Source of the DNA: Octopus sinensis
Lineage: Eukaryota
Direction of reading: 5' to 3'
NCBI RefSeq assembly: GCF_006345805.1
Contig: NW_021832249.1
Coordinates: 1 to 61,815 of the forward strand
Length of the DNA stretch: 61,815 nt
The notes under the pieces were generated by a model that was given only the letters and a program-made list of their open reading frames with translations, was not told the DNA's origin and searched no databases. A program made the translations under genes and the position numbers. Below are positions 7,162 to 48,899 of this stretch, piece after piece. How positions within the stretch are numbered: the first letter of the stretch is position 1; each line of letters opens with the position of its first letter.

Positions 7162-8150
7162 TTAAATCATATGAATCAACATATTCTGACAATTTCCTGT
7201 TCACACATTTTGTCAATAATTTATATAGATTCAGCATGCACGTGATCAGCCTTAAATCCTTTGGGGAATTACATACATCCACTTTTGGAATGAGATAGGT
7301 CACCCCAGTGTAAAACCACTCCTCAGGTAAATATTCATCATTAATAATCTTTTGAATTTCGGCACAAGGGTGTTCATGGATTGAGTAAAGTTTTTGATAA
7401 AAAAGTTGTATACTCCATCACAACCAGACGCTTTCCAATTTGGAAGCATCTTGATAGTATCATAATTGCCTCTTCCGTAAAATTAGCATAAGAATTCTCA
7501 GATCCAGTTACTTTTTGCTACCCAGAAAATTCTTCTCCCTTCGCTCACCTTATCCAAAATACTAGTCCAAAAAGAAAGGCACTCATCTTCGTCGAAATTA
7601 ATCATCCCTTCTTGTTATCTCCACTAATATTTCTATAGAATCGCCTTCTATTAAGTTCGAAACACCAATTTGCCTTTCTAAATCCTTTTCTCGATTCATA
7701 AATTCTCAACTTTTCTCAATAATCTTGATTTGGTCACACACAACGGAAATAACTCTTTCGAATTCTCCTTCTTGACTTCTTAAACCCATAAGCACAAAAG
7801 GTATTGCGTGTTATCTTCGTCAAACTGATTCTTCCCTTCATTTGACTAGCCATTCGAATTTGCTCAAGTTGCTCTTTAAGTTTGGTAAGTTTGCCTTTCA
7901 TGTTGTCTTCCCAATTACTTTTAATACTATCCCTCTTGGTAAGGGTTCTCATAAGTGCACTGTCCTGCATATATGATGTCCGTGATAACATTAATATCCA
8001 CAATAGGCAACGAATCAATGTACTCCCTTATTGCTGCATTAATACCATTTAAAATTTCCATTTTAAGCAACTGCCTTGGAATTTTCCTAGTAGGGATACA
8101 AAACGTTCCTTCCATTGTAATTACTTTCCCAATTTGGCAACAAACTCCTC
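7162..8150 (-). pseudogene. Second R4/Dong-like family, 5' part (pre-RT to RT start)
   Basis: TYLIPKVDVCNSPKDLRLITCMLNLYKLLTKC and EILNGINAAI...ITDIIYAGQ parallel copy A; cut at YDLMS by the Ginger-like TIR. Confidence 0.75.
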
Positions 8151-11100
8151 AAAGCATTTTTTAAAATTTGCATGGCGTAATTATTATAATCACATTTCAG
8201 CCAATTTGCTAATCATGGCCCACCAATGGTCCAAAGTGGAAGACATCGAAAGAACATTCGAGAACATTCTAGATAAGTCTTCAGCGAAACTTTGTACCCT
8301 AACTGGAGGAATGAGCGACATGGAGAGCCAAGTCCAGTTTTAATTAATTATGGCAGCTGGAAGTCCTCCGAGGATGCGATATTCTGATTTGTACAGTCCC
8401 CTCCTTATTTCGCCGATTGAAAGACAAATCAACCAATTTGGCCCGCTTTGCTTACTTGGTTGTAAAGGAGGCCGACCTCCTGTTGTCCACGTGGACTGAC
8501 GACATGGCCATGCTCATTTATTTGATTGGAGACTCGATGGTTCAAAAAATAGTGGTCTCCTCTCGCTGGAACTTCCATATATCACAATTCAAAGACTTTT
8601 GTCTCCCTTCTGCCCGAGTTGTAATCGATTCCGCGGTGGAGTACTCCGTGATGAAGTCTTGAGTCATGTAGTGTCAGTCATCCCACTGTAGACTGTCCAA
8701 GTGACCCAGGACGACAGAGTTTCCCAACTGAGTTGCCTCTCCCGTACTCTCCGGTCACTCTGCCACCACAGAACTCCTCTTGTCCTCGTATTTGTGAATA
8801 ACATTTCGATGATCTGAATTTGTGGCGAATGTAGAGTTGGGGGTAATTTTTAAAGACATTGAGGCAGTTGGAGATTAATGTGCATGTATTAATCCCCGGA
8901 GTGACCTCCCCTCTCACAACCCAGCCTCCCCGACCATACTGAGTGTCTTTGTCTGTAATATATAGTCAGTAATGGACGATGTCACTGCAAATGGGGTAGT
9001 CGGGCAGATCAGTGCTACTGATATTGTGCATTACGGTTGTACTGACTTTGCCCACTATGAGACTCGGTTTGGATTTATCAGTGCTCGGCTGGGAGTGTCG
9101 AAGGTAGTTTGGGCAATTATGGGTAGACTGTCTCGTCTCATGTTCTAATACACAACTCTCACTCTGGTTTGTATGCCCTTTGCAATTTCTTTGTGACCTT
9201 GATGAGTCGTGCCCAGTTACCGATTCCTGACCCCCTCAGTAGTTTGCTTTCAACAAGAAAGGAAGAAACTGCTTGTAGGACATTTACAGTTTGGATTTTG
9301 CCGGTTGAATCGACTTAAGTATTTCTTAGTTTGGGATTTCAATGTCCGGACAGTCATGGGGGCTCCCATTTTTTGATTATTCGATGACCCTGAGTGCGAT
9401 GGTCTCCCGTCGTCGGGGGATATTCGAATGTTGGTGCTTTCGTGGTCGATGCATCCCATTTCCGCTGTCGGATCATTTCCCACTCCGATTCCGGATCGTG
9501 CACAAAAACGTATGAGAAACAATCCAAGCAACTCAACATTGACATTCTTAAATACTTTTCTAACCAGCAACAGCAGATCAGGCCAGAACACTTTCAAGGG
9601 TGATCGAGTGGCTGTTTTGAGGAGAGAGACATTCAAACGGCACACTCTTTTCAATATTCCCTAGTGCTGTGATAGACGAGTGTCGAGACAATGACTTGGT
9701 CGTGACACTGCTGGACGAAGGGTCTTCTCACATAACTCAGATGGAGAACATTTTGTCCTACCGTCTGTCCTGTCCTCAATTCGGCCACAGGTAGTTGTCT
9801 GAGTGAGTGGAGTCAGGCCGTGGATGTGTATTTGAGTGGGATGTTCCGTGCGATATGAATTCAGAGTGGAATACCCAAGTGAACAGTCACGTGGAACATT
9901 AGTCAAGGAGAACAAGTCGTGGCCCACATTGAGTTGAGGTGACCACTCGTTGTAGACAGTAGAGCGGGGAATACCTTTTGGGTTAACACTCTCATCAAGT
10001 GTTGTAAACTATCCATTTTGGATGTGCCTGTCATGGACTTTGATTTGTTAAACCACTTGATTGTACAGAAAATGGGACAACCCAATAAGATGTATGCTTG
10101 GTTATCATTATAGCACATACACACACTCACTGACGACTCTACGGACACTCCATGTCCAGGTTATCCCCGTTGCCATTGACTAGATCGGAAATTGGGAGGG
10201 AGTCGTTCGAAGGAACTATTTCGGTGGAGATTAGTCATGTTGAGAGTCCGTCATTGTTTATGTGCATAAATGCGACTCGTTGGGGTTGTTCAGAGAAATG
10301 AATGGAGATTTATACAGTCAGTACTCCAAGTTTAAGCACTGTATCCACCCGAAGGAGGGGGATTACGTGATCACATATTTCCGGAAAACAACGCAAGAAA
10401 AGATATTGGTAAGTCTGTGATCTGATGGCAGTTTCCGACGTGGAATTGTGAAGGAGGTGGTCGGGGAATCACGATGTGAGGTCACGTGGGTAGATACGGG
10501 GGGAGACTCCCACTGTAGTAGTGTCGGACATGTATATGATGCCCTCGGAATACTGCCGATTCAATGCCTTTGCTCACTATTGCTGTCTCCTCCAAGGGGG
10601 ACAGTGGTCTGCTCGGGCGAAGGAGGCATTCCAACGGTTGGTGGCGAGACCTGGGGACTATTCCGTGGAGTGTGGTGATGAAGGAGTGGTGAGACTGTTC
10701 TACCACTGTCCATTTCCTATCGACATATTGGAGGAGATGAAATTGATGGGATATTCACCAGATGGAGTAGATGTGGATGTAGTGTTGGGATATATTCTGT
10801 TTAGAGGACTGAAGAGATATGTATTGAGATGAAGGATGTGTTAGACTAGTCAGTCCTGGAGGATTGGCAATATGGATTGCGGAGTCACTTCGTTCATGGT
10901 TGAGTACTGGGGGACTGACGAAGAACTGTGGAATCTCTTGCTGGATTGTTTGAGAAGTCAAGTCATTGACGAGTCTTCTTTTTGAGTCCCGTCTAGTTTA
11001 CATTCTCGAATTGAATTGAAGGTTTTGTTGTTGATTATTGTAGGGCTACGACAAAATCCTACTACCCGACGGACTACTGGATGTCTGGGGTTATTTGGTA

Positions 11101-12405
11101 GACTATGAGAGGTTTGATGTTGTGGGGTGATTGTTAGTTTTTGTGTGCAGGCCATCTATTTGGAGGCCCACTGTGTATTTATTCAACACTTGATGTATGT
11201 GGCCAATGAAGAAAGTCTGTTTTGTGTACGACTTAGTTGACGATTGTAGTGGGACTAACCGTGTTTAGAGATATGACGGACTCCTCAAATATGTTTCCAT
11301 TCCTCTGCAGGCAAATGACGAGAACATTGTGTCCTCGTCACTCCAAGTCTTCTGACACGAGAGCACTGACTGATCCTCAAGTTGTTCTCCCAATTCTAAA
11401 TGCTTCACTGTCACCCTCAGAATAAACCGTTAAATTGTTTTTACATTTCAGAGCTGCATTTCGTTTTGAATGCGAAGTGATGGCCATGTGTGGTATTTGT
11501 TATTTGTTGAGGGAGAGTGAAGACATTCAGGTAGTCTCTCTTTCTTTACATCGCAGGTTTGGAAGAGATACTCAATCTTTTCAAGTCTTATTCCTAATAT
11601 GTCTAATCCATCCTGCCTCATCAAATAAAAATTGTGGAAAATTGAAAAGGTTGTTTTTTCTTCTAATATAGGTATCATCATTTCCTGCCCCACTATCTAC
11701 GACGAGTGAAACACTGCTGGGATTATTCTGCAAACAAGAGGATGAGTCAGTCATACATGCAGTAGAGGCGGCTATCGAGCATGTGCCAGATTTTCCTAGA
11801 AATGTGTAGTCATATTGTTACTTTCAAGTTTCCCCGTTGAGTTTGCTACCTCAATGAAAGAGTTTGGAGGAGGGTTTAATATGGAGGGAAATGGAAAATG
11901 GTAAGATATTATTAATCCCAGGCTACACCCATGGTCACGTGGGCGGAGACAGACTTCAAATTGTTTTCGCAGTCCGTTTAATCAATGTTAAGGACGAGGG
12001 AGTGGTGGTAGTGAGGACAGCCATTATTGTTTCGGTATTGATACAAGTCGAATTTGTAGAGAAAGTCTGAGGGAGGGTTGTATGCGTTCTTCTGCCATTG
12101 AAGGGTTCGGTGGTGTCCTCTTCTCGATACAGAATCTGGTGAATGAAGTGCAGATTGTGTTGAGGAAGAAAGTGGCAGGGCGCTGGAAGTGTGTGTCCAC
12201 TCGTAGTCGAGTATGTGCTCTTGTAATGTCCAGTTGAACTGGTTGGCTGTGGATCCCAAGAGGTTTGTGGATTCGAATCAGAAGATGACGATTCTGACTG
12301 GAAGATAACTATTTCTTCAGCAAAACGTTTGCTTTGTCCCCTTATTTGTAGCCCACATTACCATCTGGATAGTAGTGTGGACGAATTGAGTGAGCCTGAG
12401 GATGT
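8150..12405 (+). pseudogene. TDRD12: TDRD12-like (Yb family): degenerate DEAD-like helicase + extended Tudor + C-terminal CS/p23 domain; several frameshifts and stops, 5' end missing
   Basis: Spliced reading gives LRGCDILICTVPSLFRRLKDKSTNLARFAYLVVKEADLLL, TDIVHYGCTDFAHYETRF, ISVEISHVESPSLF...RGIVKEV...VTWVDTGE...SDMYMMPSEY, then PMVTWAETD...VQIVLRKKVAGRW...NWLAVDPKRF. GT-AG introns at 8177-8200, 8332-8356, 10409-10431 and 11901-11921. Confidence 0.7.
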
Positions 12406-12407
12406 TA

Positions 12408-15120
12408 CAGTGTGCGTCCTCCTGTAATTATTAAAATTTTCTTTCTTAAACATACCTGTTTTTATCTCATTTTTCCAAAGGAAAAAATTAAACAAAGTTT
12501 TTTACATAATAAACATTTAAAAATAATCCAAAGAAAATTTTATTTTAAAAAAATTTTGACATTTTAAACAAACAGTCACAAAATCAAATGCTAATTAGTC
12601 TTGGGACAAATTACTTAATACTTTGTAAAGTTTTTTTTTTTTTTTTACAAATCAACAAATTTATACAAACAAGACAAAAATTACAGATAGCTAAGTTAGT
12701 TAAAGGCCTCACGAGACACCCGACCAGCCGCGCGAATGGCGAAGACGTTCCCTCGGATCACAGCAATCGACAGACGTTCCAGGAGCCAAGAAAACTCTCT
12801 TGGATCGTGACTAGTCCTTGAAATCCGTCGACCGAGCGAGCGACGGAAGCGGAGTGTCTTGGGACCGAAGATCCCGGAGGACTCCAAGGCAATTGGAGTA
12901 AAGAGCAGCGAGTTGGACAGGTGGCCGTACGTATTGAGAATCTTTCGCTCTCGGCCTGCCTGGAGCGTGCCCAGGATTGGCGGCGGACAGCGCGAGATTT
13001 CCAGCGAGAACGTGTCCGAGCAGGTAGAATCCCAAATAAGGGATTTCCCCTGCTCGTAGGGGAAGGGACATGCCGTCAGGCGTTTGCCATCCCCTCTATC
13101 CAATCCAACAGGTTAAGGATAGGAGGGATGCCTGATGAGGCGAGGGCTCTCTGTACGACTGAGTTGAGTTTCATGTGACGGGGGCACGACCGGCACTCCG
13201 CCGGCAAGCGAGGGGATGCAAACCGTACTCGTCAACAGTTCCCCACAACGGCATTTGTGCGACTGGAGATTTTCAGCCCGACACGGAGGGAGATTGCAAT
13301 TCTTAGGCATTCCTTGTCCAACAGGTTCCCGATGGAAGGGAGAGGAGAGCCTTTAACCAGACACCGCTGCTTTCACAGCGACCTGCACGGAGGCAAGCGA
13401 CACGGTGTTGATTGGAGACAGGAAGCAGGCCTTCGAAGATTGCCTGACAAGAGATTTCGTCCCATTGGCGATGTACAGATGAGAGTTGGGCAGCTTCGAA
13501 CCAACCGAGCCTCCCACCGACCACGGGCTGCAGAGTAAACTTCAGACAATTTCCGTTCGGGGAGGTTTCTAAGAACGATGTCTGAGAGAGTACGAGAAGC
13601 GTGATGAGCGGATAGGAATGCGGGAGGGCAAGATCGGAATAGGATCTCAAGCAAGGCCACCCAGCGCACAGGCAGGGATGCCTGAGTCCAGCCTGGATCG
13701 TCGAAAGCCAGATTGCAAAGAGAGCTCGTACCGAGCCTGAGGATATTGTCAAGGTCGGAAAGAAGGTCGCCCTTTTGAAAGCAGGGTGCACATCTTAGGT
13801 GTAAAGGATCTTAGGGACGGAGAAGTGGTTTCGGAGGAGGAAAAAGCCACATGAGGCTCGATGACTTTAAGCTTGTCGATCATTTGGATAAGTGGGAAAT
13901 TTTTCCAGCGAGTGAGCATTCGAGGGCAGAAGGCCCCCATGGGGGCACCGAGAATCGTAAGATTTGATTTGTCCGTAATCCGGACGTCTGAGAGAATGGC
14001 CTCGGCACGGGAAATTGAAGCAGTGAAGTCACTCGGATTTAAGGCAATGTTCACGATTTCGGATTTTATGCGTTTATAGATAGGCCGATGTCCGAGAGGG
14101 AAGGGAGGATAGAACGAAGGTCGTCGAAAACAGCGTCGGGGGGACCGCAAATGGTTGCGTCATCCAGATACCATATGTTAACTGGGGATCGAACAGAGTG
14201 AGCGATACTGTTAACGCCCAAGGCAACAAGGACAGGACCCAGGGGATCTCCCTGTTGGACCCCGGTGGCCGAAGAGATGGGAAACATCGTCGAACATGAG
14301 GATACTCGGAGAAGCGTATGAGAGATGTACAATGGGGATAAGCGAACGGACCAGTTCGCGACAGCACTCCAGCAGGTAAAGTATCCGTTATTCCCAAACT
14401 GCATTTAAGCGATTTTTATAATTGTTACAAGCTTTTTACAAGTTTCAACAGGAATTTTATTCCATTCTTCAAACAAAATGATTTTAATTCCGCGATATTG
14501 TTTTGGATTATGCGCCCATACTTGGCTTTTAATTCCTTCCAAAGGTTTTCACTCGGATTAAGATCTGGGGACTGACTTGGCCATTCAAGGGTATCAATCA
14601 ATGTTCTTCTAGCCATTTTTTGGAGTTTTTTGGGGTGTGCTTTGGATCATTGTCTTTTGAAATGTCCAATTTCCTGCAATACCACATTTCTCAATTCACG
14701 AAAATAGATTTTTTTCCAAAATATCACAGTATTAGAAGCATTCAATATTCCGTCAATCACATGAAGTTCTCCAATGCCCCAAGAAGAAAAACACCCCATA
14801 GCATAATACTACCAACTCCATGTTTAACTGTTGATATGGTATTTTTTGGACGATATTCATCCTTCGATTTAAGCCACACGTAGCTTGTATAATTGTGTCC
14901 AAAAATTTCTATCTTTGTTTATCCGACCAAATAAGATAGTCGTCGTCTTTAAGTAAAATTTTTTGGCATTATTATCCGTGCATGGACGTGTTTCTTAGTA
15001 AGCAGCGGAACTTTACGTGGACGACATTTATGGAACCCTTCTTTCCCTTCAGTCTATTATTTTTATAATTGAGCAATTGTAAGTCTAGTGTAGCTTCCAA
15101 CAGTAACAGTGCGACCCATG
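12408..15120 (-). mobile_element. Tc1-like transposon, decayed, split by a CRE-like insertion
   Basis: TA|CAGTG terminus at 12406-12412; WPSQSPDLNPSENLW motif. The C-terminus NNGYFTKY* is restored when 12632-14375 and one TSD copy are removed. Right boundary approximate. Confidence 0.75.
12632..14375 (-). mobile_element. 5'-truncated CRE-like non-LTR retrotransposon (RT + RLE) with poly(A) tail
   Basis: GVQQGDPLGP, WYLDD, CRCG...C and WDSTC...ALESSG...RLSIAVIRGN motifs; poly-T at 12631-12648; 7-bp TSD GTAAAGT at 12625-12631 and 14376-14382. Confidence 0.9.
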
Positions 15121-16707: not shown

Positions 16708-16741
16708 TATTTTAATTGTCGCATTGCATGTATAATTGATA

Positions 16742-18190
16742 TCTTAATAATAAAATGGTATGGTGTGTGTCGGTCTGTCTGTCTGTCTGTCTGTGTGTGC
16801 ACACCACTTCAAATTGGCAATACGATGTCCTCGACTTACATGATGAGGTCCTTAAAACCTTCCCTCAAAAAACAAATTAAAAAAAAATTTTCTGCATTTT
16901 GGTTTTTAAATGAACAACTACGATGTCCTCGACTTACATGATGAGGTCCTAAAACCTTCCCCCCCAAAAAAATTAAAAAAAAATTTTCTGCTCTTTTGGT
17001 TAAAATGAACAACTACGATGTCCTCGACTTACATGATGTGGTCCTTAAAACCTTCCCCCACAAAAAATTAAAAAAAAATTTCTGCATTTTGGTTAAAATG
17101 AACAACTACGATGTCCTCGACTTACATGATGAGGTCCTTAAAACCTTCCCCCCAAAAAAAATAAAAAAAAATTTTCTGCATTTTGGTTAAAATGAACAAC
17201 TACGATGTCCTCGACTTACATGATGAGATCCTTAAAACTATCCCCCCCCCCAAAAAAATTAAAAAAAAATTTTCTGCATTTTGGTTAAAATGAACAACTA
17301 CGATGTCCTCGACTTACATGATGAGGTCCTTAAAACCTTCCCCCCAAAAAAAAATTATAAAAAATTTTCTACATTTTGGTAAAAATGAACAACTACGATG
17401 TCCTCGACTTACATGATGAGGTCCTTAAAACCTTCCCCGCAAAAAAAAATTAAAAAAAATTTTCTGCATTTTGGTAAAAATGAACAACTACGATGTTCTC
17501 GACTTACATGATGAGGTCCTTGAAACCTTCCCGCCAAAAAATCAAAAAATTATTTCCTGCATTTGATTAAATGAACAACTTTAATGTCCTCGACATTCAT
17601 GATGAGGTCCATTAAAACTTCAAGGCAAAAATCTCACGTATTAAGAATATCCTTGATGAAAACGACAGCGAGAATATTAACACTGATGAACTCCTAATTA
17701 TTCGCGAGAAAGAAATTCAATTCATCCTATGTTTTCTCTTTAAAATTAAATGCATATATCATTATCGACATGAATCAAAATTAAAGCTATTATCATATTT
17801 GACTTTGACAGAATGTGAAATTACAGATTGCACGACTTTGAATAGAGTGTGGAATTAACAGATTTTGAAAAACCACTTTGATAGTTGAAACCACATTAGC
17901 ACAATCATTAACACAATTTACCACCAATTGACGCACGACCTTGAATAGAGTGTGCAATTAACAGATTTTGAAAAACACTTTGATAGTTGAAACCACATTA
18001 GCACAATCATTAACACAATTTACCACAATTGACAGCGCCATCAGAAGAATTTGCGTAAAATATTAACTATTTAGTTAATTTCGTAAAGCTAGAATTTATT
18101 TTATACATCTACATAAACTTATAGTTGTTTGATGAAACAGGCCCTCCGCAGGAGCTAGGTCGCGGTGAGCGAAGCGAGCTGCCGAGCTAG
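16742..18190 (+). mobile_element. Non-autonomous Helitron, copy 1
   Basis: A|TC start, (GTCT)n microsatellite, internal minisatellite, GC-rich subterminal gcggtgagcgaagcgagctgc, CTAG|T end, no TSD; same termini as 27874-30121. Confidence 0.88.
16820..17610 (+). repeat. ~95-bp minisatellite, about 8-9 units, inside the Helitron
   Basis: Unit tacgatgtcctcgacttacatgatgaggtccttaaaaccttcc(C)n(A)ntt(A)nttttctgcattttggttaaaatgaacaac. Confidence 0.95.
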
Positions 18191-18268
18191 TGTAAAAATA
18201 AATTTTAGACAAGCCATTCAAAAATAATAAATTAAACATCAAAATTATTACAAAAATAATTAAAATAC

Positions 18269-20861
18269 CAACAAAGGGCCCTGATTGGAAATGCCACGAA
18301 GAAACACTCCGACGCTCTTTCATGGGCAAAACTATTCCTCTTTCGTCTACGCTTTGGGCGTCCCGATACAGCAACAAAGAGATGGGCAATCCCTTGCTAA
18401 AGTTTTGAAAGCGCAGATCGCTGAATTCATGTCCAATTGCGAGTCCGTCCTGCCCCTACCGAAGGGACGCACAAAGTTGAAAGAAGGCCTTCAAAGGCAT
18501 CTGAGGCCGAAAGGATACGGCGGCTGGTACGGACAAAACTCAATGGAAGGAGACGTAAAGGCCGCTGTACGAACCATATCCTCGGACCTGGGCACCCTCC
18601 CATACAGCACTGCTACTATGTTTCTGCATTGAAGGCGAAACATCCCAGCGCCCTGAAGACTTTCGTGAATTCCACCTCCCTAATGTCATGCCACTAGTAG
18701 CCTCGGCCGCGGACGTCTCCGATAGCCTGAAATCTTTCCGTCGCAGCAGCTCTGGTGGTGTGGATGGCCTAAGGCCTGGCATGTTCGTGATTTGATGTCT
18801 CGGCTCTCAGGGGAAACTACCTTGCTCGAAAAGATCGTCGGACTCTCTAACAAGATTCTGTCCGGCGACTTATGCTCTTTTGCCCGTGAGATGATCTCTC
18901 CTCATGGTTGACGGCCCTAAAGAAGGCGGATGGCGGAGTTCGCCCCATTGCTGTCGGAAACATTTTCCGAAGGATTGCTTCCAAGATAGCAAGCAAGGCA
19001 GGCTCTGGGAACTTCTGTCGTACTTCGTACCAACACAGCTCGGAGTTGGTGTCCGAGGAGGCGCTGAGGCCGAGGTCCACGCTCTACGTGAGTTTGTTTT
19101 TTCTTCCAGGATTCCAACGAATTCTGGCCAAGACGATTTAAGAATGCATTTAATTCTGTTAGAAGAGACTGTATTCTTGAAGCTTGTGCCAAAGAATTCC
19201 GCACATCCTACCGATTGTAAATTTGGCATACTCCAAGCCTTCCGCACTTGTATTCGGAACAACAATACTTGATTCTGCCAATGGAGTTCAACAAGGTGAC
19301 CCTCTAGGTCCTCTTTTATTCTCCCTCGCAATTCACCACAACGAGATCATGTAAAAATGATCTTAACATGTGGTATTTGGATGATGGAGTAATTGGAGGA
19401 ACCCCTGAGGGCATCTTGGAAACGCTGAAGTCTCTTGTTTTTAAATTTGGAGCGCTTGGGCTTGAATTCAACTGCGGCAAATGCGAAATTGTGAATGTCA
19501 ACACGGACGAACTTTCCTTTCGTAAGTGGATGACCGAATTCGACAAATGCTACCTGGATGCACCTTCCCCCTCAAAGAGGACTTGATTTTTCTTGGATTT
19601 CCTATTTTGAAAGTGGTATCAAAGCTGTTATGAAGGCTAAAATTTCGGAATTTTCCCTTCTCTCTGAAAAATTACGTTGTGTGGATAGCCACATTGGGCT
19701 CTTTTTAATGAGGAACTGTCTATCTATTCCGAAGTTAACATACCTTTTGAGGACGGCCCAATGCTATCAGGAAACAGATCTTCTCGAAGACTATTCCGAG
19801 CATATGAGAGCTTGCACTGAGGACATCCTCAACGTTAGCTTCGATACGCAGTCGTGGAAACAGGCAACTCTTCCAATTTCCCTGGGAGGGATCGGCTTGA
19901 TCACCCCGGCAGATTCAGCGCACGGCGCATATTTTTCCTCAGTACTCTCGTCCAGAGATATGATCGACACTCTTCTTTCTCAAATAAACGAACAGAGGAA
20001 ATCATTTGCTGTGGATGATTGCGTCGCCGTATGGGAAAGCTGGGATTGCCATTGCCATCTGATGTGACCTGCCAATCGGAGTGGACGTCGAAAGTCCACG
20101 CCAATACGTTTCATGCCTAAAGGAAACCATGGACCAGAGAAGGTTGCTTGTTTACAAGCGGGCAGCCAGCCCCTAAGCGGCGCATGGCTAAACTGTTACC
20201 CTTGTAATACAACTGGCTGCCTTCTTAATGATGAGCCGTAAGAATTGGAGTTTGTCTGCGCCTCGGTCTACGCGTCTATGAAAAACACCAATGCGGTGCG
20301 GCGTGTGGACTGACGAGTTTGGATATCACTCCCTCTCCTGTCGAAACGGAATTAGACGTTCCTCACGGCATTCCGAACTGAACCAGATCATCTGTCGATC
20401 TCTTTGAACTGGGATTCCACACACAATTGGAACCTGTAGGGATTTTCGTAGAGGACGGCAGAAGACCGATGGGATGACCACATTTCCATCCAGAGGGGAA
20501 AGTGTCTGGTTTGGGACGTCACGTGTGTGAACTCCTTTTCCAATCAGAACATCAAATTATGCATCGAGAATCCTGGAGCCCCGTCTGAACGGGCAGAAAA
20601 GAGAAAAGCTGAGAAATACGCTGGAATTGGGAATGGGAGAGTGTTTGTCCCCCTGGCTGTTGAGACGTCAGGAATACAGGGGCCTTCTACTCGGACCCTA
20701 CTCCAGCGCATTGCCTCATTAATCGGAAGGGTTACCGGCGACCCGTGTGAGCACCGGTATTTAATCGAAAGAATATCTATAGCAATAGTCAGAGGCAATA
20801 CTCTGGCTATCTGCCAATGACTATTTCTCTTTTGGTTTACATAAATAAAAGTCTTTTTGAC
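18269..20861 (+). mobile_element. CRE-like non-LTR retrotransposon, decayed, distinct family
   Basis: ALKKADGGVRPIAVGNIFRR, WYLDDG and LAVETSG...ERISIAIVRGN; probable 8-bp TSD TAAAATAC at 18261-18268 and 20862-20869. Confidence 0.85.
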
Positions 20862-21239
20862 TAAAATACTATTTTTTACATATAATTTACGTCTGCCATT
20901 TACTTTTGCTTTTTTAATTCGAAGTGGGTCCCTTCACGCTTGATATTTAAAAATAAAATTTTAGACAAGCCATTCTAAAATAATAAATTAAACATTAAAA
21001 TTATTATAAAAATAATCAAAATACTATTTTTTCCATATAATTTATATCTGCCATTTACTTTTGCCTTTTTAATTCTGTAACGTCCCTTCAAGCGTGGGGG
21101 TCCTTTCAAGCCGGTGACATATAATATTTTTAAAAAACAAAAAAATAAACAATACTTTATTTAATGTTTTAAATCAATAGAAGTTATTTTTTTAGATATT
21201 GATTTATGGTAAATTCGTGAGAAAATGCTTGTTTAGTTT

Positions 21240-21983
21240 TTATATTTTTTTTAACTGTATGTTTTCTGTTGATACCCAGCCCGGTTTACGGAATTCATAG
21301 ATAATCAAAATTATGATTAAAAAGCCAAACCCAATGATTAAAAAACATGTAAAATGACTAAACTTATGTATCTAATTGTACTGGAGGGATGAATCCAATG
21401 GCTATGGCAATGCAAAAGGTAAATAAACCGACGCTTGCCACATCCCATTTTTCTTTTTTTGGTTAGGGATTCGATAAATGTGTGGCACATGAAAGTAGAA
21501 TGAAAGGAGAGGCGAAAAACTGAAATGAACACTAAAATTTACATGACCAGATACATTTGACCAGAAATCGTTTTTAGCATCCAGTACGCAGGACTTACGT
21601 TTGGCATAAAGTTCCTGACAAAGGAAGCGATGGTGATTCTCTCTCGCTTGGGAGAGAATCAAGTGTGTCGAATACCATGTTTATTGAGATTTTGGAAAAC
21701 GGGGAAAAATTGCCATGAACAAATCTAATGTAGATAGTTTTGACAGGCCCACATGATTCAAGAGTTAACTTCTGTTATGGCCCCCAGAACAAGCAATATG
21801 GCGAAAGTCAGTAGCAGCCACTCAAGATGATAAAAACTCAAATAGAGTTTAAGCGCTTTCATTAGTCCATCTTTTTTCTTGAAATCACGACATCGACTGA
21901 AAAGACGCCATGCATGAATAGAAAAAAACGATGATTGCAGAAATCATAATCTCACGTGGATAATTCTTTTGTGGATTTAACAT
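21240..21983 (-). pseudogene. C-terminal half of a bacterial-type APC amino-acid permease (GadC-like), intronless, with stops and frameshifts
   Basis: Stitched reading: MLNPQKNYPREIMISAII...GLMKALKLYLSFYHLEWL...LGAITEVNS*I.GP...FFQNLNKHG...FMPNVSPAYWMLKTISGQMYLVM*ILVFISVFRL...YRIP...GMW.ASVGLFTFCIAIAIGFIPPVQL...IIYEFRKPGW. Confidence 0.72.
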
Positions 21984-22019
21984 CTGATTTTCAGATATAC
22001 AAAGAATTAAGCCACTTTT

Positions 22020-22450
22020 CCGTGTTTTTTATTATTGTCAAGATAGACGTTAAAAAGGAAATATTATTCTTATAAATCCTTTTTCTTAACATTTTTCTTT
22101 TGGCATCGAGTATACATAGGCCTTTTTACAAGACATTTTAAACAAGACCTGAGAACAGCTATGACTACATCTCTGCAAGATCCATAGACTAAATTCTTTA
22201 AAAGAGAAAGAAGTCTATTCGACCAGGATTTCCATTTTTTCGGAGAAAATTTTTAATAAATATTCTCTTCTGTTCATCTTCTTCCACAGCGAACACATGC
22301 AAAAGAATCCCACTTGATACAGTCAACCCTCTTTGTAAAGTTCGAAACTCAGTCATTAGGTGCTTAAAATATATTAGTTTCATTTGAATTAGAACACACA
22401 TTTTGATATAATGACTTTGCTTTTTCCTTGAGAATTACATCATTATGAAA
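22020..22450 (-). pseudogene. pogo/Tigger transposase remnant (CENP-B HTH region)
   Basis: ILKEKAKSLY...F.APND.VSNFTKR resembles IL.EKA..L....F.AS.GWL..FKKR; highly decayed. Confidence 0.4.
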
Positions 22451-22639
22451 GACACCACCGGCTTTAACCATATCAAAAAAAATTTAAATAAGCCTGAAAA
22501 AATAGGTAAAAATAGAAAAATGGTCAAAAATAGAAAAACATAAGTAAAAAAATTTTAATTTTTGTAGTAAAAATGGAGAGTGGCAAATAATAGAGGTAAT
22601 AAATTAGAGATGTTGATCCAAATAATATTATTTACTTGA

Positions 22640-23150
22640 AAAAAGTGCCTCTATTGCCGAATCGATGTTTGCATCGCTAAATTGATATTAGCATTAGTGA
22701 TTAGATTCTGAAATCTGCCCTTTAAAAGTCTCGACAAAAATTTGATTATTGAAATGTTATGAACACACTTTTCAGTTCAATATCAGCTTGTAAATCAATT
22801 AATTCTAGTAGGTAAATTTTGGAAACCTTATCACTTTTTTATAATTAGTGGAGTCGCAAATAATCTCATTTAATTTGAGCCCTTTTTAAAGCCCCGTTAT
22901 TGCTTCAAATTGTGAGATTAAATTATCAATTATTTTTAAATATTTTTTCAGTTAAACCATCTTAGGAATTTTCCGACAAATATTGAAAATGTAAGTATTT
23001 TTTAGTAGATATCTGCGTTTTTTATAAACTTTATTTCTTAGCGAATACATCAATATACCCATTAATTTGATAATTGAGCTTATTTTTGCCTCGTAGTTCG
23101 ACATTCAGCTTATTTATTTTAAGTGAATAAGATAATTTAAGGAAGTTGAT
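22640..23150 (-). pseudogene. hAT (SPIN-like) transposase C-terminal remnant
   Basis: LFATP...LLELIDLQADIELKSVF...FQNL. Confidence 0.45.
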
Positions 23151-23848
23151 AAAATCTTAATATAAATATAACAGAAATTTACTTTCTGAGACAAAAGCTA
23201 CGATTTAACTATCTCACTACTGAAAAAAGAAGGACATCACCATAATCCGAATCCGTTTCAGTTGAAGATGATTTAAATTTTCGGTGATTCAAAGCCTTCG
23301 CCAGAATCCGATTAACTATACATATTACAACTTCAGAAACATTTTTAATTTTTATGTTGTTACAAATTAAATTTTTCTGATGTATAATGCAACAATGCTA
23401 TAATATTTGATTCCAAATATTATCATATCTCCATTTATTTATAAGTCCAGAAAAACCAGTTTTACTGGCAACCATAGAGAGAGCGCCATCAGTTGAAATT
23501 AAAACTAATTTCTTCAGATCAACTTAATAATTTCACAATTGAAGAAAAAATCTTTGTTCCTTTAGTTTTTCGTGAATTTTAGCGAAGCTAGATTAGCTTT
23601 ATCAAAATTTAATAACATTTACGTTATCAAAAATTAAAACGATGTAGTGAATAGCTTGACTAGTTTAAACCAAACTTATAGACATTTCCAATCAAATTAC
23701 ACATCTTCTCTAGGTTCGTGTATTTTTAGATGTGTTATAAGAACTAGTCTAAATATCGAAAAATATGTTTTACTTGTATTTCAGACTAAAAAAATTCCAA
23801 AATATGGCACCGAAAGCCACTAACTAAATGGTTTAAAAGACGACACCA

Positions 23849-26800
23849 AAACAATGTTTAATAAAAAATTAATTATGTAAATTCTATCTTAAATTATTTA
23901 AGAATCCAGATCGTCAGTGATTTCTCTTCTTCGCTTGGAAGAAGAGTTTGCAACAAAATTCTCATCATTTTCCATTTCTGCGTCAAAGTAATTGTTCAAC
24001 TGAGTGTCCTCACGACATGCCAGCTCCGCAAGTTGATTGGCGGCAGAGGCGTACTCCTCGTTGTCTACCTTCATCCCATGTCTGTGTTCAATAAGCATAC
24101 TCTCTAGAGTCCTCTTCAGCACAACCGACTGGATGTATGTCCTCGTTCCTTCTTCAATGGATAATTTGTCCATATGACTTTTAAAGAACTTTGAGACAAC
24201 TCCATCCCATGTCAAGACAATTGGAATAATCTTCACTTTTGCTTCATAGAGAACCGACAGTTCGTTTGCAAGCAGGTCATATTGTGAAATTTCTCCACTT
24301 CAACTTGCTTTAAACGGTCTTGCGAGGTAACTCCCACTTCGATTAAATGAATTTCTCTTTTCCTCTTGTCATAAACGAAGATATCAGGTTTATTGAATTG
24401 AACCTTTGTTTCAGTCATAATTGAAGTGTCAACTCTAATTTCGACATTTTGGGTCGACATTGTTGACACGACTGAATGTCCTTCAATTTCCTGCTTCGTT
24501 TTATTCCATACATTCGACACAAGTGGAGATGAATACACTTTACCACTTCGTTGTGTCTTCGGAGATAATCACTGTTTAGCATCCTACCACACCGCGTGGC
24601 TAGATGGTCAACAGTCTGCCTGCTTTTTTTGCAGTGGACGCATAGTGATCCCGTGTATGCAAAGAACAAATTCCTATCCTGCAAAAGACAGTACAATGCT
24701 TCGCTTCGTGGACCATTGTTCCCTTTCGATAGCCATTGCGAAGAAGTAGATATGTCGACATCTGATTCCTCCATACATTTAAACATCACCGAGTGTAGTG
24801 ATTTACTGTTAATTCGGTTAAGCAAGAGTTTCCTTTGTGCGTCCTTCAGTAACTCAATGGTCAGATTTCCCTGCCGACAGCTGCATATTTGGAGACAAGA
24901 AATTCTGCGATTGTGGCTAAGTGCCATTTTTTCCTTTTATTACTCGCAGAATACCCGACCTCCGCAGACAGGTAGTCGACTGTTTTTCCAAACTTTTAAG
25001 AAACTGGAAGAGCATTAATTCGCTTTTGAAAGAAATTGAGGCAAGTCCTCTTCCAAGGGTCTTGCGGTCCAAATACAACCTCTCCTTATTTGCAGGCTGG
25101 AGGTGTAACTTGAGAGTCGTAAGCAATCGGCGTATTTGTTGGTCAATCTCATCAAATTCGTAAGGTTCGATATTGATTAGCCCAATATAATAATTATATA
25201 GGGATAATGCATATTCATTGATTCCACGGAACAAATTTACAGCATTCAGGTTTGTTTTTGACAACATAGTTATTCTCTTCTTGACATTCTCCAATATGGA
25301 GTCCATAACTTTATTCTTGAGAACATTACTTCCGCCATCTTCAAGTACACCCAAGTAGCGATATCCGTTGATTCCATCGACAGTCTCACAGCATGATAAA
25401 GATTCCACATTAGATGCTGATTTTTCGGAATTCATCTCTAGGCCGACACTTTCAAAAAATCCATTAACAGCCTCCATCATTTTGACTAACACATCTTCTT
25501 TGAGGGCAACTATTTTCAGATCGTCAATAAAGAAGAAATGATTGGTGGAGTATGTCAACATATTGGGATCTTCCCGACTAATTTCGAGTTTGGGAAACAT
25601 GGAGTTAAGCATCCTGCTTAGGGGATCCATCGCCATAACGAATAGCAGCGGGGACAATGAATCTCCTTGGAGTATTCCCCGGCTTAACTTTACTTTCCCA
25701 ATTCTTTTCCCATCGATATGTAAGTTTACTGTCCACTTCTTGACTATATTCTTTACAAAGCTGACAATCCAATGTGGTATTCCAGAGCAATCCAATACGT
25801 GGAACAAGAACTCGTGATCAACTGAGTCAAATGCCTTCTTCACATCGACCCAAGCAGAATAGAGGCCATTTCCATACTCTTTATTTAAGCATTGGTTAAT
25901 GAGGGCTTGCTCTTTGGCGCCTTGACATTGCTTCCTCGTCCCAAGCTGATTATCTGAGATTAAGCCAAATGCCTCGATGAAATCGGCCAGTTTGGCATTA
26001 ACACATTTGGTGACAAGTTTATACAAAGTTGGCATACACGTTATAGGGCGTAAGTCCTTCGGGGTCTCACACTCACTTTTTTTAGGGATCAAGTAAGTTA
26101 CGCCAGTGTAAAACCAGCTATCAGGCGTGTACTCTCCATTAATTATTCGGACTATCTCTTACACAGAAACCCATGCAAAGAATCCATCTTCTTTAAGAAA
26201 AAGTTATACGTTCCGTCGCATCCGCATGCCTTCCAGTCAGGTGCATATTTGAGCATATCCATAATAAAATCACTTGTGAATTGAGGTCGCATGGTTTCAG
26301 CGCCAGTACACCTCACACCCACAAAATCATAAACTACGGGCCCCATATTTTTCTTGCTCCAGACATCTTCCCAAAATGATAAGCACTCACCATCACCAAA
26401 CCCATACAGGGTGGCTTCGTTGCTCGAAGATAAGTTTCGATAAAATCTTCTGCGGTTTAATTCAAAACACGCATTGTCTTTCCGGAAATTTTTCCTCGAG
26501 GAATGGATAGATATCTGTTTCTTTTTGATTCTAATTAGATCATTCAATAGAGTCTCAATTCTGGTTAGCTCCCCCTTCTTAGACTTCTTATATCCGTAGC
26601 GGCAGAGAACATCCATTGCCTTTTGCTTTTCTGCCTGAGGCAAGGTTTGTTTGGAGAAGGAACGAACTGTGTCAATTTCATCTGCTAATTTAGAGATTTT
26701 TCTTTCCGTGTTTTCCAACCATGTGCTCTGTGTCTGGCTCTCGTAGTTAAGGCCAAATAAGCACACTGTGCAGCATATAGAATATCGGTAATTTGATTAA

Positions 26801-27425
26801 TATCTTGGGGCGGATCATCTTTTGTAATATGATAAATTGCAGAATTTAATCCAGCCAGGATATCAGTTTTTACCATCCTTCGTTGCACCTTTGGAGTTGG
26901 CTTTCGAGAGTCTCTCTGAATAGACTGAACTTTCCCAATTTGGAATTTGAGTTCCTCTAGGCAATTTCTGAAACTGGAAATTTCTACGTCCACATCATCT
27001 TGCACTCTGGAAGAGTCGCATCTCCCTTGCACATTGTTATTCCGTCTAGCCATGCTCTTTAGTTGGCACATAAACTAGAGCACTTTGCCGAGTACTTCTC
27101 ATTGAACTTATCCAGGACAAGGTTCCAACCACCTCTTGGCATCCTTCCAAGTCTTTGCTTCGCGGCAAGGGCAATCTGAGACACCCATTCGCCTTCAGAG
27201 ACACCATTGACATTTCCGATGATCGCAGAAAGAGAATGCAAGTTAGTTTTGGCAGCATCACCAACAAGATCTTCTTTAACACCATTAGCTCTTGTGGCAT
27301 TGTGAGGTCCCATAGGCGACGGTCCTGTCTTTTTTAAGTTTTTATTTGCAGGAAGGCCCGTAGGTTGCGTTTTCCTTAACTGCTTGGAAACGTACATGCA
27401 CACACCACAACAACAATAATATAAT
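23849..27425 (-). mobile_element. Full-length R4/Dong-like non-LTR retrotransposon, copy B
   Basis: Highly similar to 712-4236; a 391-aa RT stretch is open (24917-26092); 13-bp TSD AAAGACGACACCA at 23836-23848 and 27426-27438. Confidence 0.93.
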
Positions 27426-28044
27426 AAAGACGACACCATATAAATTATCTCTAAATTAGACATCGCGATTAAAAAGTTTAAAATAAATCCTTGGGAAATA
27501 AAAGATCTCAAAATAAAATTCGAGGAAATGAATATGGAGAAGACGGAAATCTTATTCAAAAAAGAAACAGTTTCAACTGGGTCACTGGGTAGGCAAATTA
27601 CTCGATATTTTCGACGGTTGATTAGATTGCACGTTTTAATTAGATTCCATGGTTTGATTAGAATCTACTTGTTCGAGATTGATTAGTTTGAATGGGTAAA
27701 CTTGTTCGAGATGGTGCACACTTCATATCACCCAGAGCACGTTGCATAATCTATTTATAACAATAGATTGGAATCGTAAATACATATGACATCACCATTA
27801 TAATTTTGACATCACCATGTTCTGGATGAGAGTCTGTACGAAATTTATTAGACGTCCTTAAAAGTTGAGTTAATCTTAATAATAAAATGGTATGGTGTGT
27901 GTCTGTCTGTCTGTCTGTCTGTGTGTGCACACCAACTTCAAATTGGCAAAGTACAGATAAATTGTCAAAATCTTTCCCCCTTATAATTAGCCAATAATGG
28001 GGAACAAGCTTAAAATCATGAACTCCTCCAAGAATCTTCCACCC

Positions 28045-28745
28045 TACGATGTCCTCGACTTACATGATGAGATCCTTAAAACCTTCCCCCCCAAAAAAAA
28101 TTAAAAAAAAATTTTCTGCATTTTGGTTAAAATGAACAACTACGATGTCCTCGACTTACATGATGAGATCCTTAAAACCTTCCCCCCCAAAAAAAATTAA
28201 AAAAAAAAAATTCCGCATTTTGGTTAAAATGAACAACTACAATGTCCTCGACTTACATGATGAGGTCCTTAAAACCTTCCCCCCAAAAAAAATTAAAAAA
28301 AAAATTTTCTGCATTTTGGTTAAAATGAACAACTACGATGTCCTCGACTTACATGATGAGGTCCTTAAAACCTTCCCCCCCAAAAAAAATTAAAAAAAAA
28401 TTTTCTGCATTTTGGTTAAAATGAACAACTACGATGTCCTCGACTTACATGATGAGGTCCTAAAAACCTTCCCCCCAAAAAAAATTAAAAAAAAATTTTC
28501 TGCATTTTGGTTAAAATAAACAACTACAATGTCCTCGACTTACATGATGAGGTCCTTAAAACCTTCCCCCCCAAAAAAATTAAAAAAAAATTTTCTACAG
28601 TTTGGTTAAAATGAACAACTACGAAGTCCTCGACTTACATGATGAGGTCCTTAAAACCTTCCCCCCCAAAAAAAATTAAAAAAAAATTTTCTGCATTTTG
28701 GTTAAAATGAACCACGTTAAAGTCCTCGACATTCATGATGAGGTC
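28045..28745 (+). repeat. ~96-bp minisatellite, about 8 units
   Basis: Same unit as 16820-17610. Confidence 0.95.
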
Positions 28746-29551
28746 CATTAAAACCGTCGAGGCAAAAATCTCACGTATCAAGAATATCCTTGATGAAAAC
28801 GACAGCGAGAATATTAACACTGATGAACTCCTAATTATTCGCGAGAAAGAAATTCAATTCATCCTATGTTTTTCTCTTTAAAATTAAATGCATATACCAT
28901 TATCGACATGAATCAAAATTAAAGCTATTATCATATGTGACTTTGACAGAATGTGCAATTACAGATTGCACGACTTTGAATAGAGTGTGCAATTAACAGA
29001 TTTTAAAAACCACTTTGATAGTTGAAACCACATTAGCACAATCATTAACACAATTTACCACCAATTGACGCACGACCTTGAATAGAGTGTGCAATTAACA
29101 AATTTTGAAAAACACTTTGATAGTTGAAACCACATTAGCACAATCATTAACACAATTTACCACCAATTGACAGCGCCATCAGAAGAATTTGCGTAAAAAT
29201 ATTAACTATTTAGTTAAGTTTTTTGTAAAGCTAGAATTTATTTTCGGTATGCCTCTTTTCCTAAACTTTTTTATTATTCAAAAATAATTTTTTCAATAGA
29301 TAACCGAAGGAGGGAAGACGATCTTAAGAAAAGAAGTTTTTCGTAAAGATAGAATTTATTTTCTGTATGCCTCTTTTTTCCTAATATTTTTTATTATTCA
29401 AAAATAATTTTTTAAATAGATAACCAAAGGAGGAAAAACGAAGCTGAAGAAAAAACGGTCAGCTTAATAAGGTAATTAATTAAATCTTTTTTGTGTGTCG
29501 CTTTTTTGCCTGCCGCATCTCTGCCTGCCGCATCTTCGCCTGCCGCTTGAA

Positions 29552-30594: not shown

Positions 30595-30625
30595 CAGTGA
30601 TTCTCAAGTACGAATGTGTCGCCCC
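30595..30625 (+). mobile_element. Orphan Buster-type hAT terminal repeat
   Basis: CAGTGATTCTCAA...GTCGCCCC preceded by the 8-mer CTATAAAT, which has a central TA. Confidence 0.5.
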
Positions 30626-30629
30626 TTCT

Positions 30630-33042
30630 GTGGTTAACACTAAAACTTCCTCCGATTGCATCTACCTCCGTCGTAAAATGAACAGCAAGCTGTTGGATGG
30701 CGATGTCCGTGGAGCTGTCAGACTTGTTGCCTCCTCTAACCGGCTTTTGTCCCCATCTCCTCCCGTTTTGTCTAATTTGAGATCCAAGCACCCCAGTCTT
30801 CCAGTAAACTCCCGCACCCAACCCGCTATCGATACGACCGCCCTTCCGCAACTGCTGGTTACCGCTTCACAGGTCGAGAAGGCACTGAAAAGTTTTTCCC
30901 CAAGCAGTAGTGGGGGTATAGATGGGCTGAAGCCCGGACACATTAAAGACTTGACTTCACCTCTTACTGCTGAGGCAGGCCGTCTCCTCTTGGAATCTAT
31001 CACCAATCTCTGTAACCGTCTTATCGGTGGTAATTTACCGGATTTTGCTCGGGCGATTTTCTTCTCGGCTAATCTCACTGCTTTGGGTAAAAAAGATAAC
31101 GGGGTCAGGCCGATCGCCGTGAGTAATGTTTTCCGTAGATTGGCCGGAAAGCTCGTTTGCCACGTTGTGATCCCCGAGTTGGTCCCGAAATTTTTGCCAG
31201 TCCAATTGGGCGTCGGCGTCAGTGGAGGGTGTGAATCGGCTGCCCATGCCGTAAGAGAACTTATGGATTCTTCATTGGAATATCTTTTAGTTAAACTTGA
31301 CATATCAAATGCGTTTAACACAGTGAGACGGGATCATTTGCTCGAGACCTGCCTTTCTCTCGCCCCCTCCGCCTATCCTCTGGTCCACCTTTCGTACTCA
31401 CAACCCAGCCTCCTCCTGTTTGGCGATTCCTTTATCGTCTCATCGACCGGAGTGCAACAGGGAGATCCCCTGGGGCCTTTTCTATTTGCTATGTGTGTCA
31501 ACTCCGTCGCTCATTCTGTCCGCTCTACAGTAAATATCTGGTACTTGGACGACGCGACGATTTGTGGACCTCCCCGCTCTGTCTTAGACGACCTGCGGAG
31601 CATTATCCCGGCCCTTTCATCCATCGGTCTGGAGATAAACTCAAGCAAGTCCGAAGTCCTAAATCTGAATATTCCTTCCGATTTTTTTGCCGAAACTCTG
31701 GACACCCTGGAACCTATTCTAAAAGGCGCGCGGGTATCAGAAACAAAGGACCTTGGTTCGCCAATTGGTCACGAGGCCCTCTTACAAACGCTCATCGCCA
31801 AGGCAAGCAATCTGTCAAACATGATCGAACGGCTTTCCCTCATTGATGCCCACGTCGGGTTCTTTCTTATGCGTAACTATTTCTCAACTCCGAGGCTTTT
31901 GTACACCCTAAGGAGTTCTTGTTTTCGCATGCCTAATCTGTTATCCGATATCGATTCTATCTTGAAGTCTGGAGCCGAGTATCTGTGCAACATCCATTTC
32001 GACGCTCTGGGGTGGCTTCAATCTTCCCTGCCTGTTAATCTCGGGGGGATTGGCCTTCGTTCGCCCGTTTATCTGGCTCTTCCTGCCTTCCTCTCGTCCC
32101 TGGCATCATCCCGTGCCCTCACTGACATCGTTCTCAGAAACCTTCCCGAACGAAAAATGTCAGTTGATCACGTGGCCGCTCTCGACCTTTGGGATTCTGC
32201 GTATACCAAAAGACCTGCCGACCCATCCGTCCAGGGTCAGTGGGATTCGATCACTTGTGACACTCTCTCCTCTGTCCTGCTTCAGAGTTTCGACCAGCAC
32301 AGGCTGGCCTGTCTTCGTGCGGGCTGCAGTCCGGGCAGTGGGGCCTGGCTTGACGCCCTTCCCCAACCGAACATCGGGACACTACTAGACGGCGATTGTC
32401 TCAGAGTCGCTATTTCTCTGCGTCTCGGTTTGAATATCTGTGAAATTTACAAGTGCCGCTGTGGGGCCATGATCGACCAGTACGGACTACACCCTCTTTC
32501 CTGCAGACGCAGTGCTAGGCGGGCACCACGCCACACAGCCTTAAATGACGTTGTCTTGAGGGGTCTCAATGCTGCCGGAATTCCATCAATCCTAGAACCG
32601 GCTGGGCTTGCTAGGGGAGACGGAAAAAGACCTGACGGTCTATCCACCTTCCCCTTTGAGTTTGGCAAGTCGCTGATTTGGGACGCGACATGTTCAGATA
32701 CTTTCTCTGAACCTAATCTTCCCTTGTCAGCCGTCGCAGGCGGTTCGGTGTCCCTTAGAACAGAAAAGCTTAAGATTGCGAAATATAGAGAACTCTCGGA
32801 GCGATATCTATTCGCCCCTGTTGCTGTCGAGACTTCAGGGGTCATTGGGGAAAAGTCTTTGACTTTCCTTTATAAGCTCGGACGTCTGATCTCTCTGAAG
32901 AGAAATGACACACGCGAGACGGGCTGGCTTCTTCAGAGGATTTCCCTTGCCATCGTACGAGGAAACTGTTTCTCCATCTACGAAGCGGGGAAGTCCTCTA
33001 ACTAACTTTATCACATTCATTTTCTATTATTAAAAAAAAAAA
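30630..33042 (+). mobile_element. CRE-like non-LTR retrotransposon, 5'-truncated, with uninterrupted RT + zinc finger + RLE frame and poly(A)
   Basis: Open ~790 codons to the stop at 33005: GVRPIAV, LDISNAFN, QQGDPLGP, WYLDD, CRCG...HPLSC, RPDG...WDATC...AVETSG, RISLAIVRGN; A11 tail at 33032-33042. Confidence 0.93.
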
Positions 33043-48499: not shown

Positions 48500-48830
48500 T
48501 TTTGTATCTTCAGTACTTTGAATAAACGCATGGGTACCCATGGGAGAGGTTGGAGGAACATGTCTGGGACAACTATGGCCAACTTCGCGATCAAAAAAAC
48601 AATTATTCATTTGCAACACAGCATTCCAACACGCTGCAAGGCATATCACGACCTGGATCGGAGAGCGCAGAAACTCAGATGGACATTCAATCAAAATATA
48701 CAACAAAATTGACTACATACTTTCTTGACAATCACAGAAAGCTTTACTCTGTGACGCCAGAACAATCACAGAAAGCTCGAGGAACGTTAACATCCTGTGA
48801 CCATAAACTATTGGAATTCGCAGCGTAATT
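48500..48830 (+). pseudogene. RTE-type apurinic-like endonuclease fragment
   Basis: FICNTAFQHAARHITTW...IYNKIDYIL. Confidence 0.75.
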
Positions 48831-48899
48831 TGTCCCAGCTCTGTTGGAGTGATGTTTGGATCGGGAATTTTAATCCTGATTCCTTCCACAGCATACATC

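Follow-up and report, generated by a model that had tools for sequence, protein, structure and literature searches.

A truncated and decayed GadC-family permease gene of probable chlamydial origin in a contig of Octopus sinensis

We found the C-terminal half of an amino-acid permease gene of bacterial type within a stretch of 61,815 nucleotides (hereafter the window) that was otherwise filled with transposons. Most probably it was a non-functional, 5'-truncated remnant of DNA from a Simkaniaceae-like intracellular bacterium that had been transferred to the octopus germline. Horizontal transfer had already been proposed in a preliminary description of the window, and it was still the best explanation after our analysis, in which the donor was narrowed to Chlamydiota and, among these, was closest to Simkaniaceae-labelled genomes.

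Results

Extent and identity of the permease relic

The relic was 0.73 kb long (about 245 codons) and covered residues about 219-466 of a protein of ~471 aa, which would correspond to roughly TM7-TM12. The following features were placed on it:

21264 to 21989, minus strand: relic of the C-terminal half of a chlamydial-type APC/GadC-family amino-acid permease, defined by TIGR03813, Pfam AA_permease_2, a profile of 45 chlamydial proteins and the alignment to the permease of locus L063
21243 to 21263, minus strand: tail of the reading frame past ...RKPGWV, ending in a stop (..STENIQLKKI, then stop), near the C-terminal end of the homologues; the alignment path guided by locus L010 reached 21246
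21758 to 21760, minus strand: in-frame TGA at an invariant Trp (EVNS-W-IM), from the frameshift-aware alignment
21539 to 21541, minus strand: in-frame TAA at an invariant Tyr (YLIM-Y-IF), from the frameshift-aware alignment
21366 to 21925, minus strand: span of nine reproducible frameshifts, at about 21925, 21881, 21751, 21698, 21669, 21644, 21495, 21462 and 21366, each within 10 nt on either side

A crude stitched translation of 251 residues matched two GadC-type models of NCBIfam, namely TIGR03813 (E 1.8e-25, profile positions 223-466 of 479) and NF053662 (E 2.4e-23). With the frameshifts corrected, the corresponding values were E 1.6e-36 (126 bits) and E 6e-33, and the relic matched Pfam AA_permease_2 (PF13520) over positions 215-423 of 427 with 44.9 bits against a cut-off of 27 (E 1e-11). 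The uncorrected stitched translation gave no match in Pfam. When all six frames of the 61.8-kb window were searched with a profile of 45 full-length chlamydial homologues, only 21989-21264 matched, at profile positions 219-466, and a tblastn comparison of the relic with a Simkaniaceae locus gave E 5.7e-47. For the detailed alignments we wrote a protein-to-DNA aligner that permits frameshifts, and its significance was judged by shuffled queries: the best homologue scored 502-503, while 20 shuffled queries reached a maximum of 52. According to this alignment, the relic was 55.6% identical to the L063 permease at the amino-acid level (143 of 257 aligned positions).

Read on the minus strand in three frames, the relic contained the motifs NPQKNYPR, NKHG, MPNVSPAYWML..GQMYLVM, YRIPNQKKKNGMW, IGFIPPVQL and IIYEFRKPGW. 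The motif series listed in the preliminary description was thus present in full. The extent given there (21240-21983) was close to the profile-defined one (21264-21989), and its remark that no intron was evident agreed with the alignment, which was collinear and had no gap of intron size. The GC content of the relic (37%) was higher than that of its flanks (23-28%) but lower than that of the donor genes (39-46%).

Decay of the relic and noise in the assembly

The relic had neither a start codon nor an open frame, and its match was confined to profile positions about 219-466 instead of the complete 12-helix transporter core. Since the start codon, the N-terminal six or so helices and the open frame were all missing, no transporter could be made from this locus today. 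We infer that this copy never functioned in its host.

Only two in-frame stops lay on the best alignment path, the TGA at 21758-21760 and the TAA at 21539-21541. Both had been placed exactly, and at the same Trp and Tyr codons, by the preliminary description, which was also right that the frame was shifted but had undercounted the shifts. The best path contained 9-10 frameshifts, nine of which were placed consistently under four different reference proteins. Reading the stops through alternative genetic codes (TGA as Trp, TAA as Tyr) was considered and found unnecessary: each stop was a single-base change from the ancestral codon, and the frame was broken many times.

Several of the frameshifts adjoined homopolymer runs. 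When the young retroelement copies of the window and of an O. sinensis contig were compared with each other, they differed by 24-48 gaps per 3.4 kb, ~80% of them of the 1-bp homopolymer type, and these differences suggested that the assembly or assemblies contain indel noise from long reads. An argument that the assembly was too clean for frameshift errors was therefore dropped. Because such 1-bp homopolymer indels were abundant in the assembly, a share of the 9-10 frameshifts may stem from the assembly, and the decay of the relic may be overestimated. This noise had no bearing on the two nonsense substitutions or on the absence of half the gene.

Assignment to the GadC branch of the APC superfamily

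In a search of all PDB chains, E. coli GadC (4DJI/4DJK) was the sole match to the relic (E 9.5e-5); SLC7, AdiC or other APC structures gave none even at E 10. The best NCBIfam models for the relic were of the GadC type, followed by the tyrosine-tyramine antiporter (E 1.1e-20). The intact donor-type protein of locus L063 scored against the NCBIfam models as follows:

TIGR03813 (GadC type): 480 bits
NF053662 (GadC type): 458 bits
tyrosine-tyramine antiporter: 323 bits
L-type (SLC7-type): 57 bits

The claim that the gene was bacterial and GadC-like, not an animal SLC7 or SLC12 transporter, was borne out both by the PDB search and by these scores (480 versus 57 bits on the donor-type protein). Judged by its profile matches, the relic is a member of the glutamate:GABA antiporter branch (TC 2.A.3.7) of the APC superfamily. 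A shared function or substrate does not follow from this, since even the intact Simkaniaceae homologue (480 bits) fell below the equivalog cut-off of 650 bits, as did the relic itself (126 bits). E. coli GadC (b1492; 4DJI/4DJK), a glutamate:GABA antiporter assigned to TC 2.A.3.7, belongs to the same APC subfamily as the relic, but the two were only 24% identical. Animal SLC7 proteins (LAT/CAT) have the APC superfamily fold (AA_permease_2) in common with it; however, no SLC7 structure matched the relic.

At loci L063 and L007, which belong to complete Simkaniaceae genomes, the genes within 3 kb on either side of the permease were those of MgsA, an ABC-F ATPase and an outer-membrane protein, and none encoded a decarboxylase. 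Both loci shared the arrangement in which the ABC-F ATPase gene was located upstream on the opposite strand and the MgsA/RarA gene immediately downstream. These genomes are reported to encode a glutamate decarboxylase, at a site away from the permease, and a glutamate/GABA antiporter (PMC8382752).

Donor lineage

A word-indexed search of 5.8 billion proteins with the relic as query retrieved three metagenomic "amino acid transporters" with 32-37% identity, with which the relic was collinear up to their C-termini. When the relic was combined with the Simkaniaceae sequences in a profile, the same database yielded 75 proteins. The named ones were labelled Chlamydiales, Chlamydiota or Chlamydiia and, further down, Aerophobetes, Pseudomonadota and Legionellales. 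With either query, no eukaryote-labelled homologue was present among the named matches. The metagenomic matches also served as queries for an exhaustive HMMER search of 1.84 billion cluster representatives, the results of which were unnamed. Its 150 best representatives were all farther from the relic than the Simkaniaceae loci were, and no closer sequence came up.

We also scanned one genome per prokaryotic species with seeded motifs and confirmed 227 relatives, although the taxon list was biased because the patterns were taken from chlamydia-like matches. The best 80 of the 227 were almost all Chlamydiota (Simkaniaceae, Rhabdochlamydiaceae, Parachlamydiales) or MAGs labelled PVC, with two Gammaproteobacteria at the far end. 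In both tblastn and frameshift-aware comparisons, the top scorer was Simkaniaceae M30B1 (CP073763.1, a complete genome), followed by loci L018, L012, L007 and L030. The frameshift-aware score was 502-503 for the M30B1 permease versus 117 for E. coli GadC.

In a neighbour-joining tree of about 237 columns, the relic was sister to the clade of L063, L030, L007, L012 and L018. Support was moderate: in 83 of 100 bootstraps the sister group of the relic fell inside a Simkaniaceae-type set of six members, that is, the five-member clade and L032. For the bootstrap tree, the relic was corrected with a Rhabdochlamydiaceae protein as the guide in order to avoid circularity. A frameshift-aware homology search and a phylogeny had been called for in the preliminary description; here the named matches were chlamydial or other bacterial, and the relic was placed next to the Simkaniaceae-type clade.

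Taken together, these comparisons suggested a donor from the Chlamydiota that was closest to Simkaniaceae-type sequences. Since the identity was only 56%, the actual donor was probably an unsampled relative and not the M30B1 species. We state the donor in these broad terms because the scan was biased to chlamydia-like motifs and the tree method was simple.

The closest counterpart was the permease of 'Candidatus Andegerimia shunetia' M30B1 (Simkaniaceae; CP073763.1, ~1,423,392-1,424,807; positions 2731-4146 of locus L063), which was collinear with the relic and had the same C-terminus. The two had in common the blocks GLMEALKLYLS, AILLV.GAI.EVNSWIMGPVK, FQNLNKHG, YRIP, AI.IGF.PP and LIIY.F.KPSWV. 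Orthologues of this permease were found in M30B2 (CP073762.1) and in other Simkaniaceae-labelled MAGs. Unlike the M30B1 gene, the octopus copy was only a half, was broken, and lay in animal DNA without the bacterial neighbours (the ABC-F ATPase and MgsA genes).

Host and flanking DNA

The transposon field of the window included RVT_1 ORFs, a Tc1/mariner ORF (DDE_3), a pogo/Tigger ORF (DDE_1) and a borderline hAT ORF. A reverse-transcriptase ORF located 3 kb from the relic was 85-99% identical to Octopus sinensis proteins. Moreover, a 20-kb stretch of the O. sinensis contig VCDQ01010235.1 carried the young retroelement (98.4% identical) together with several further repeats of the window (93-100% identical); this stretch represented a different locus, because its overall arrangement differed. 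Since its transposons matched O. sinensis proteins and repeats so closely, the window is to be regarded as octopus DNA of the O. sinensis group. The same identities (85-99% to proteins, 93-100% to contig repeats) spoke against the "reduced parasite" that had been suggested as the host. The sequences on the two sides of the relic were as follows:

23852 to 27422, minus strand: young retroelement copy (RVT_1), 97-99% identical to 713-4236 and 98.4% to VCDQ01010235.1
23170 to 23496, minus strand: weakly hAT-like remnant of a transposase; no recognisable transposon piece lay closer to the relic on its 5' side; tblastx E 4e-4 to 43625-43941 on the plus strand
20863 to 21075, strand not assigned: AT-rich tandem unit of 155 bp that flanks the relic on its 3' side; a part of this unit recurred at 18193-18268, beyond the retrotransposon remnant
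18269 to 20862, plus strand: decayed remnant of a non-LTR retrotransposon, with ORFs that resembled the tail of the 802-aa RT ORF at 30597-33005 and with a shared flanking repeat

Octopus repeats were thus present on both sides of the relic, at distances between 400 bp and 1.9 kb, a linkage known from one assembly. On the 5' side, the relic was separated from the young retroelement copy, which would anchor it in octopus DNA, by 1.9 kb of AT-rich sequence that matched nothing in Pfam or NCBIfam. The hAT-like remnant within this interval had no Pfam or NCBIfam matches of its own and only chance-level ones in a PDB search. On the 3' side, the remnant at 18269-20862 came to ~400 bp from the relic, and its C-terminal ORF ended at 20820. 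Copies of the 155-bp unit were recognised by comparing 18193-18268 with 20948-21024 and 20863-20920 with 21018-21075. Since 18269-20862 splits this repeat, the retrotransposon appears to have inserted into it. An exact-ORF look-up of the relic and the transposon ORFs returned no record of the same locus in other assemblies.

Absence of the N-terminal half and of bacterial neighbours

The N-terminal half of the permease was absent from the whole 61.8-kb window, according to tblastn with three metagenomic and five chlamydial proteins and to the six-frame profile search. Frameshift-aware alignment did not find it in 21990-24000 either (score 35, against 32-43 for shuffles), and an apparent extension of the relic to about 22080 was rejected as lying within the noise. 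The preliminary description had stated that this half was replaced by a Tigger remnant. The half was indeed missing; the Tigger part did not hold, because 21984-23860 contained no DDE_1/pogo signal, and the sole pogo/Tigger ORF (DDE_1) of the window was located at 56966-57604.

A frameshift-aware search for MgsA, the downstream neighbour in the donor, scored 53 compared with 44-54 for shuffles and thus did not find it. No match besides the relic was obtained when the window was compared with 80 chlamydial loci by tblastx, and no bacterial families were detected by NCBIfam and Pfam in the six frames of 21984-23860. The window contained no further copies of the relic, and a repeat search revealed no terminal inverted repeats or target-site duplications around it.

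Other elements of the window

Three retroelement copies, at 713-4236, at 23852-27422 and at 8064-11530 of the O. sinensis contig L084, were 97-99% identical to one another, and the element is therefore young and possibly active. For the reverse transcriptases at 24917-26092 and 758-2316 (both on the minus strand), the next-best named relatives after O. sinensis were from microsporidia and Babesia, with 41-50% identity. The microsporidian relatives belonged to Nucleospora, Vairimorpha, Hamiltosporidium, Dictyocoela and Pancytospora. This patchy distribution among hosts and parasites could reflect horizontal transposon transfer.

An intact ORF of 802 aa at 30597-33005 (plus strand) had an RVT_1 domain and a Cys/His-rich, nuclease-like C-terminal tail, and we take it to be a non-LTR element of the restriction-like-endonuclease type. 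Its decayed relatives were found at 12696-13103, 18269-20862, 37634-39586, 46557-47330 and 48808-50139. Tandem arrays with a period of ~95 bp at 16741-17687 and 28044-28824 were related to each other and also to 11730-12577 of L084. A hAT-like remnant at 43625-45736 (plus strand) included an ORF at 45026-45736 with a borderline match to Dimer_Tnp_hAT (E 2.5e-4, 21.2 bits compared with a cut-off of 21.4). Two ORFs of 120 aa were located on the minus strand. The one at 41482-41844 had a faint match to the C-terminal part of the P element, and the one at 58975-59337 had a Lys/Glu-rich centre and the motifs FGFSSFGK and MGFSGFGK, with no Pfam match at E 0.001.

Discussion

The origin of the relic can be pictured as follows. 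The octopus lineage would have been infected by an obligately intracellular chlamydia whose DNA entered germline nuclei, where a piece of it may have been joined to a chromosome through non-homologous repair. Either only a part of the gene was inserted, or the 5' half and the neighbouring genes would have been lost later via deletion and transposon turnover. The inserted piece would then have drifted without selection and acquired the two nonsense substitutions and several frameshifts.

Transfer of non-functional DNA was not the only possible origin. The relic might instead be a pseudogenised duplicate of a chlamydia-derived octopus gene that was once functional or still is, with an intact permease elsewhere in the cephalopod genome. 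The 12 functional genes of bacterial origin reported in Octopus bimaculoides indicate that this lineage can domesticate bacterial genes (PMC6011040), and the relic could be younger than it appears if indel noise inflated the frameshift count. We considered this origin unlikely, because that published list contained no permease or transporter (PMC6011040), no eukaryote-labelled relative was retrieved from the 5.8-billion-protein database by the relic or by the relic and Simkaniaceae profile, and the relic was intronless and lacked its N-terminal half within the 61.8 kb.

It was very unlikely that a virus or mobile element had picked up the fragment, either in a chlamydia or in some other chlamydial host, and had then inserted or amplified it in the octopus genome. 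In favour of this origin, the relic was short and isolated in a dense transposon field, and the hAT-like remnant lay on its own strand 1.2 kb upstream. However, the relic was not repeated in the window, had no terminal inverted repeats or target duplications, and was not adjoined by a transposase or viral signal.

Fusion of chlamydial contaminant reads to octopus sequence during assembly was a highly implausible source. Chlamydiae infect marine animals, so that contamination is conceivable, and the locus is known from one assembly, but a contaminant would be expected to be intact and accompanied by its bacterial neighbours. What we found was half a gene with two nonsense codons and multiple frameshifts, no bacterial genes nearby, octopus repeats 400 bp to 1.9 kb away on both sides, and a best bacterial homologue that was only 56% identical. 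Finally, there are many APC-superfamily genes in animals and the uncorrected Pfam scan gave no match, but a decayed native transporter (SLC7 or related) with a superficial likeness to GadC had a practically negligible probability given the 56% identity to chlamydial proteins over the whole half-gene (24% to E. coli GadC), the match to GadC with no SLC7 or eukaryotic APC structure even at E 10, the 480 bits (GadC-type) versus 57 bits (L-type) of the donor-type protein, and the lack of introns.

The preferred reading, a chlamydial fragment decaying in an octopus chromosome, has well-known parallels. Fragments of Wolbachia are present in the chromosomes of insects and filarial nematodes, where most of them are truncated, have no function and are degrading amid the repeats of the host. 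The well-documented insertions of this kind in animal chromosomes nearly all derive from Wolbachia or other symbionts of arthropods and nematodes. The proposed route was the same for the relic, namely a fragment of an intracellular bacterium in a host chromosome. Unlike in the Wolbachia cases, the donor would be a member of the Chlamydiota and the recipient a cephalopod, and we observed a single 0.73-kb piece and not a multi-gene block.

Transfer from bacteria to octopus has been described before. The 12 genes of bacterial origin in O. bimaculoides include Zn-metalloproteinases, ACS, D-AL, PGS, SRL and UCP (PMC6011040). In contrast to the relic, these genes are intact and expressed; no permease is among them, and a chlamydial donor is not mentioned (PMC6011040). 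The relic is a pseudogene fragment, and transfers of this class are left out both by surveys of this kind and by a metazoan HGT compendium (PMC13342648). In a limited search of the open-access literature we found no reports of chlamydial DNA in the genomes of cephalopods or other molluscs, or of chlamydiae in octopus.

It is conceivable, though rather unlikely, that the relic is the tip of a substantial transfer of Simkaniaceae-like DNA to cephalopod germlines, with many fragments and possibly an intact, expressed permease elsewhere. If so, it would suggest that cephalopods had a long-standing germline-associated chlamydial symbiont or pathogen. The relic alone had no functional consequence and gave no support to acquisition for host nutrition or acid tolerance, which the preliminary description had suggested as possible roles. 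The type of event is known, the donor-recipient pair is unusual, and the locus has no present function. Pieces of intracellular bacterial DNA in the chromosomes of an animal record, as molecular fossils, past infections that extended to its germline. If the present case is borne out by reads and by orthologous copies in related species, the octopus germline would at one time have been accessible to a Simkaniaceae-like chlamydia, and the relic would be a datable marker of that association.
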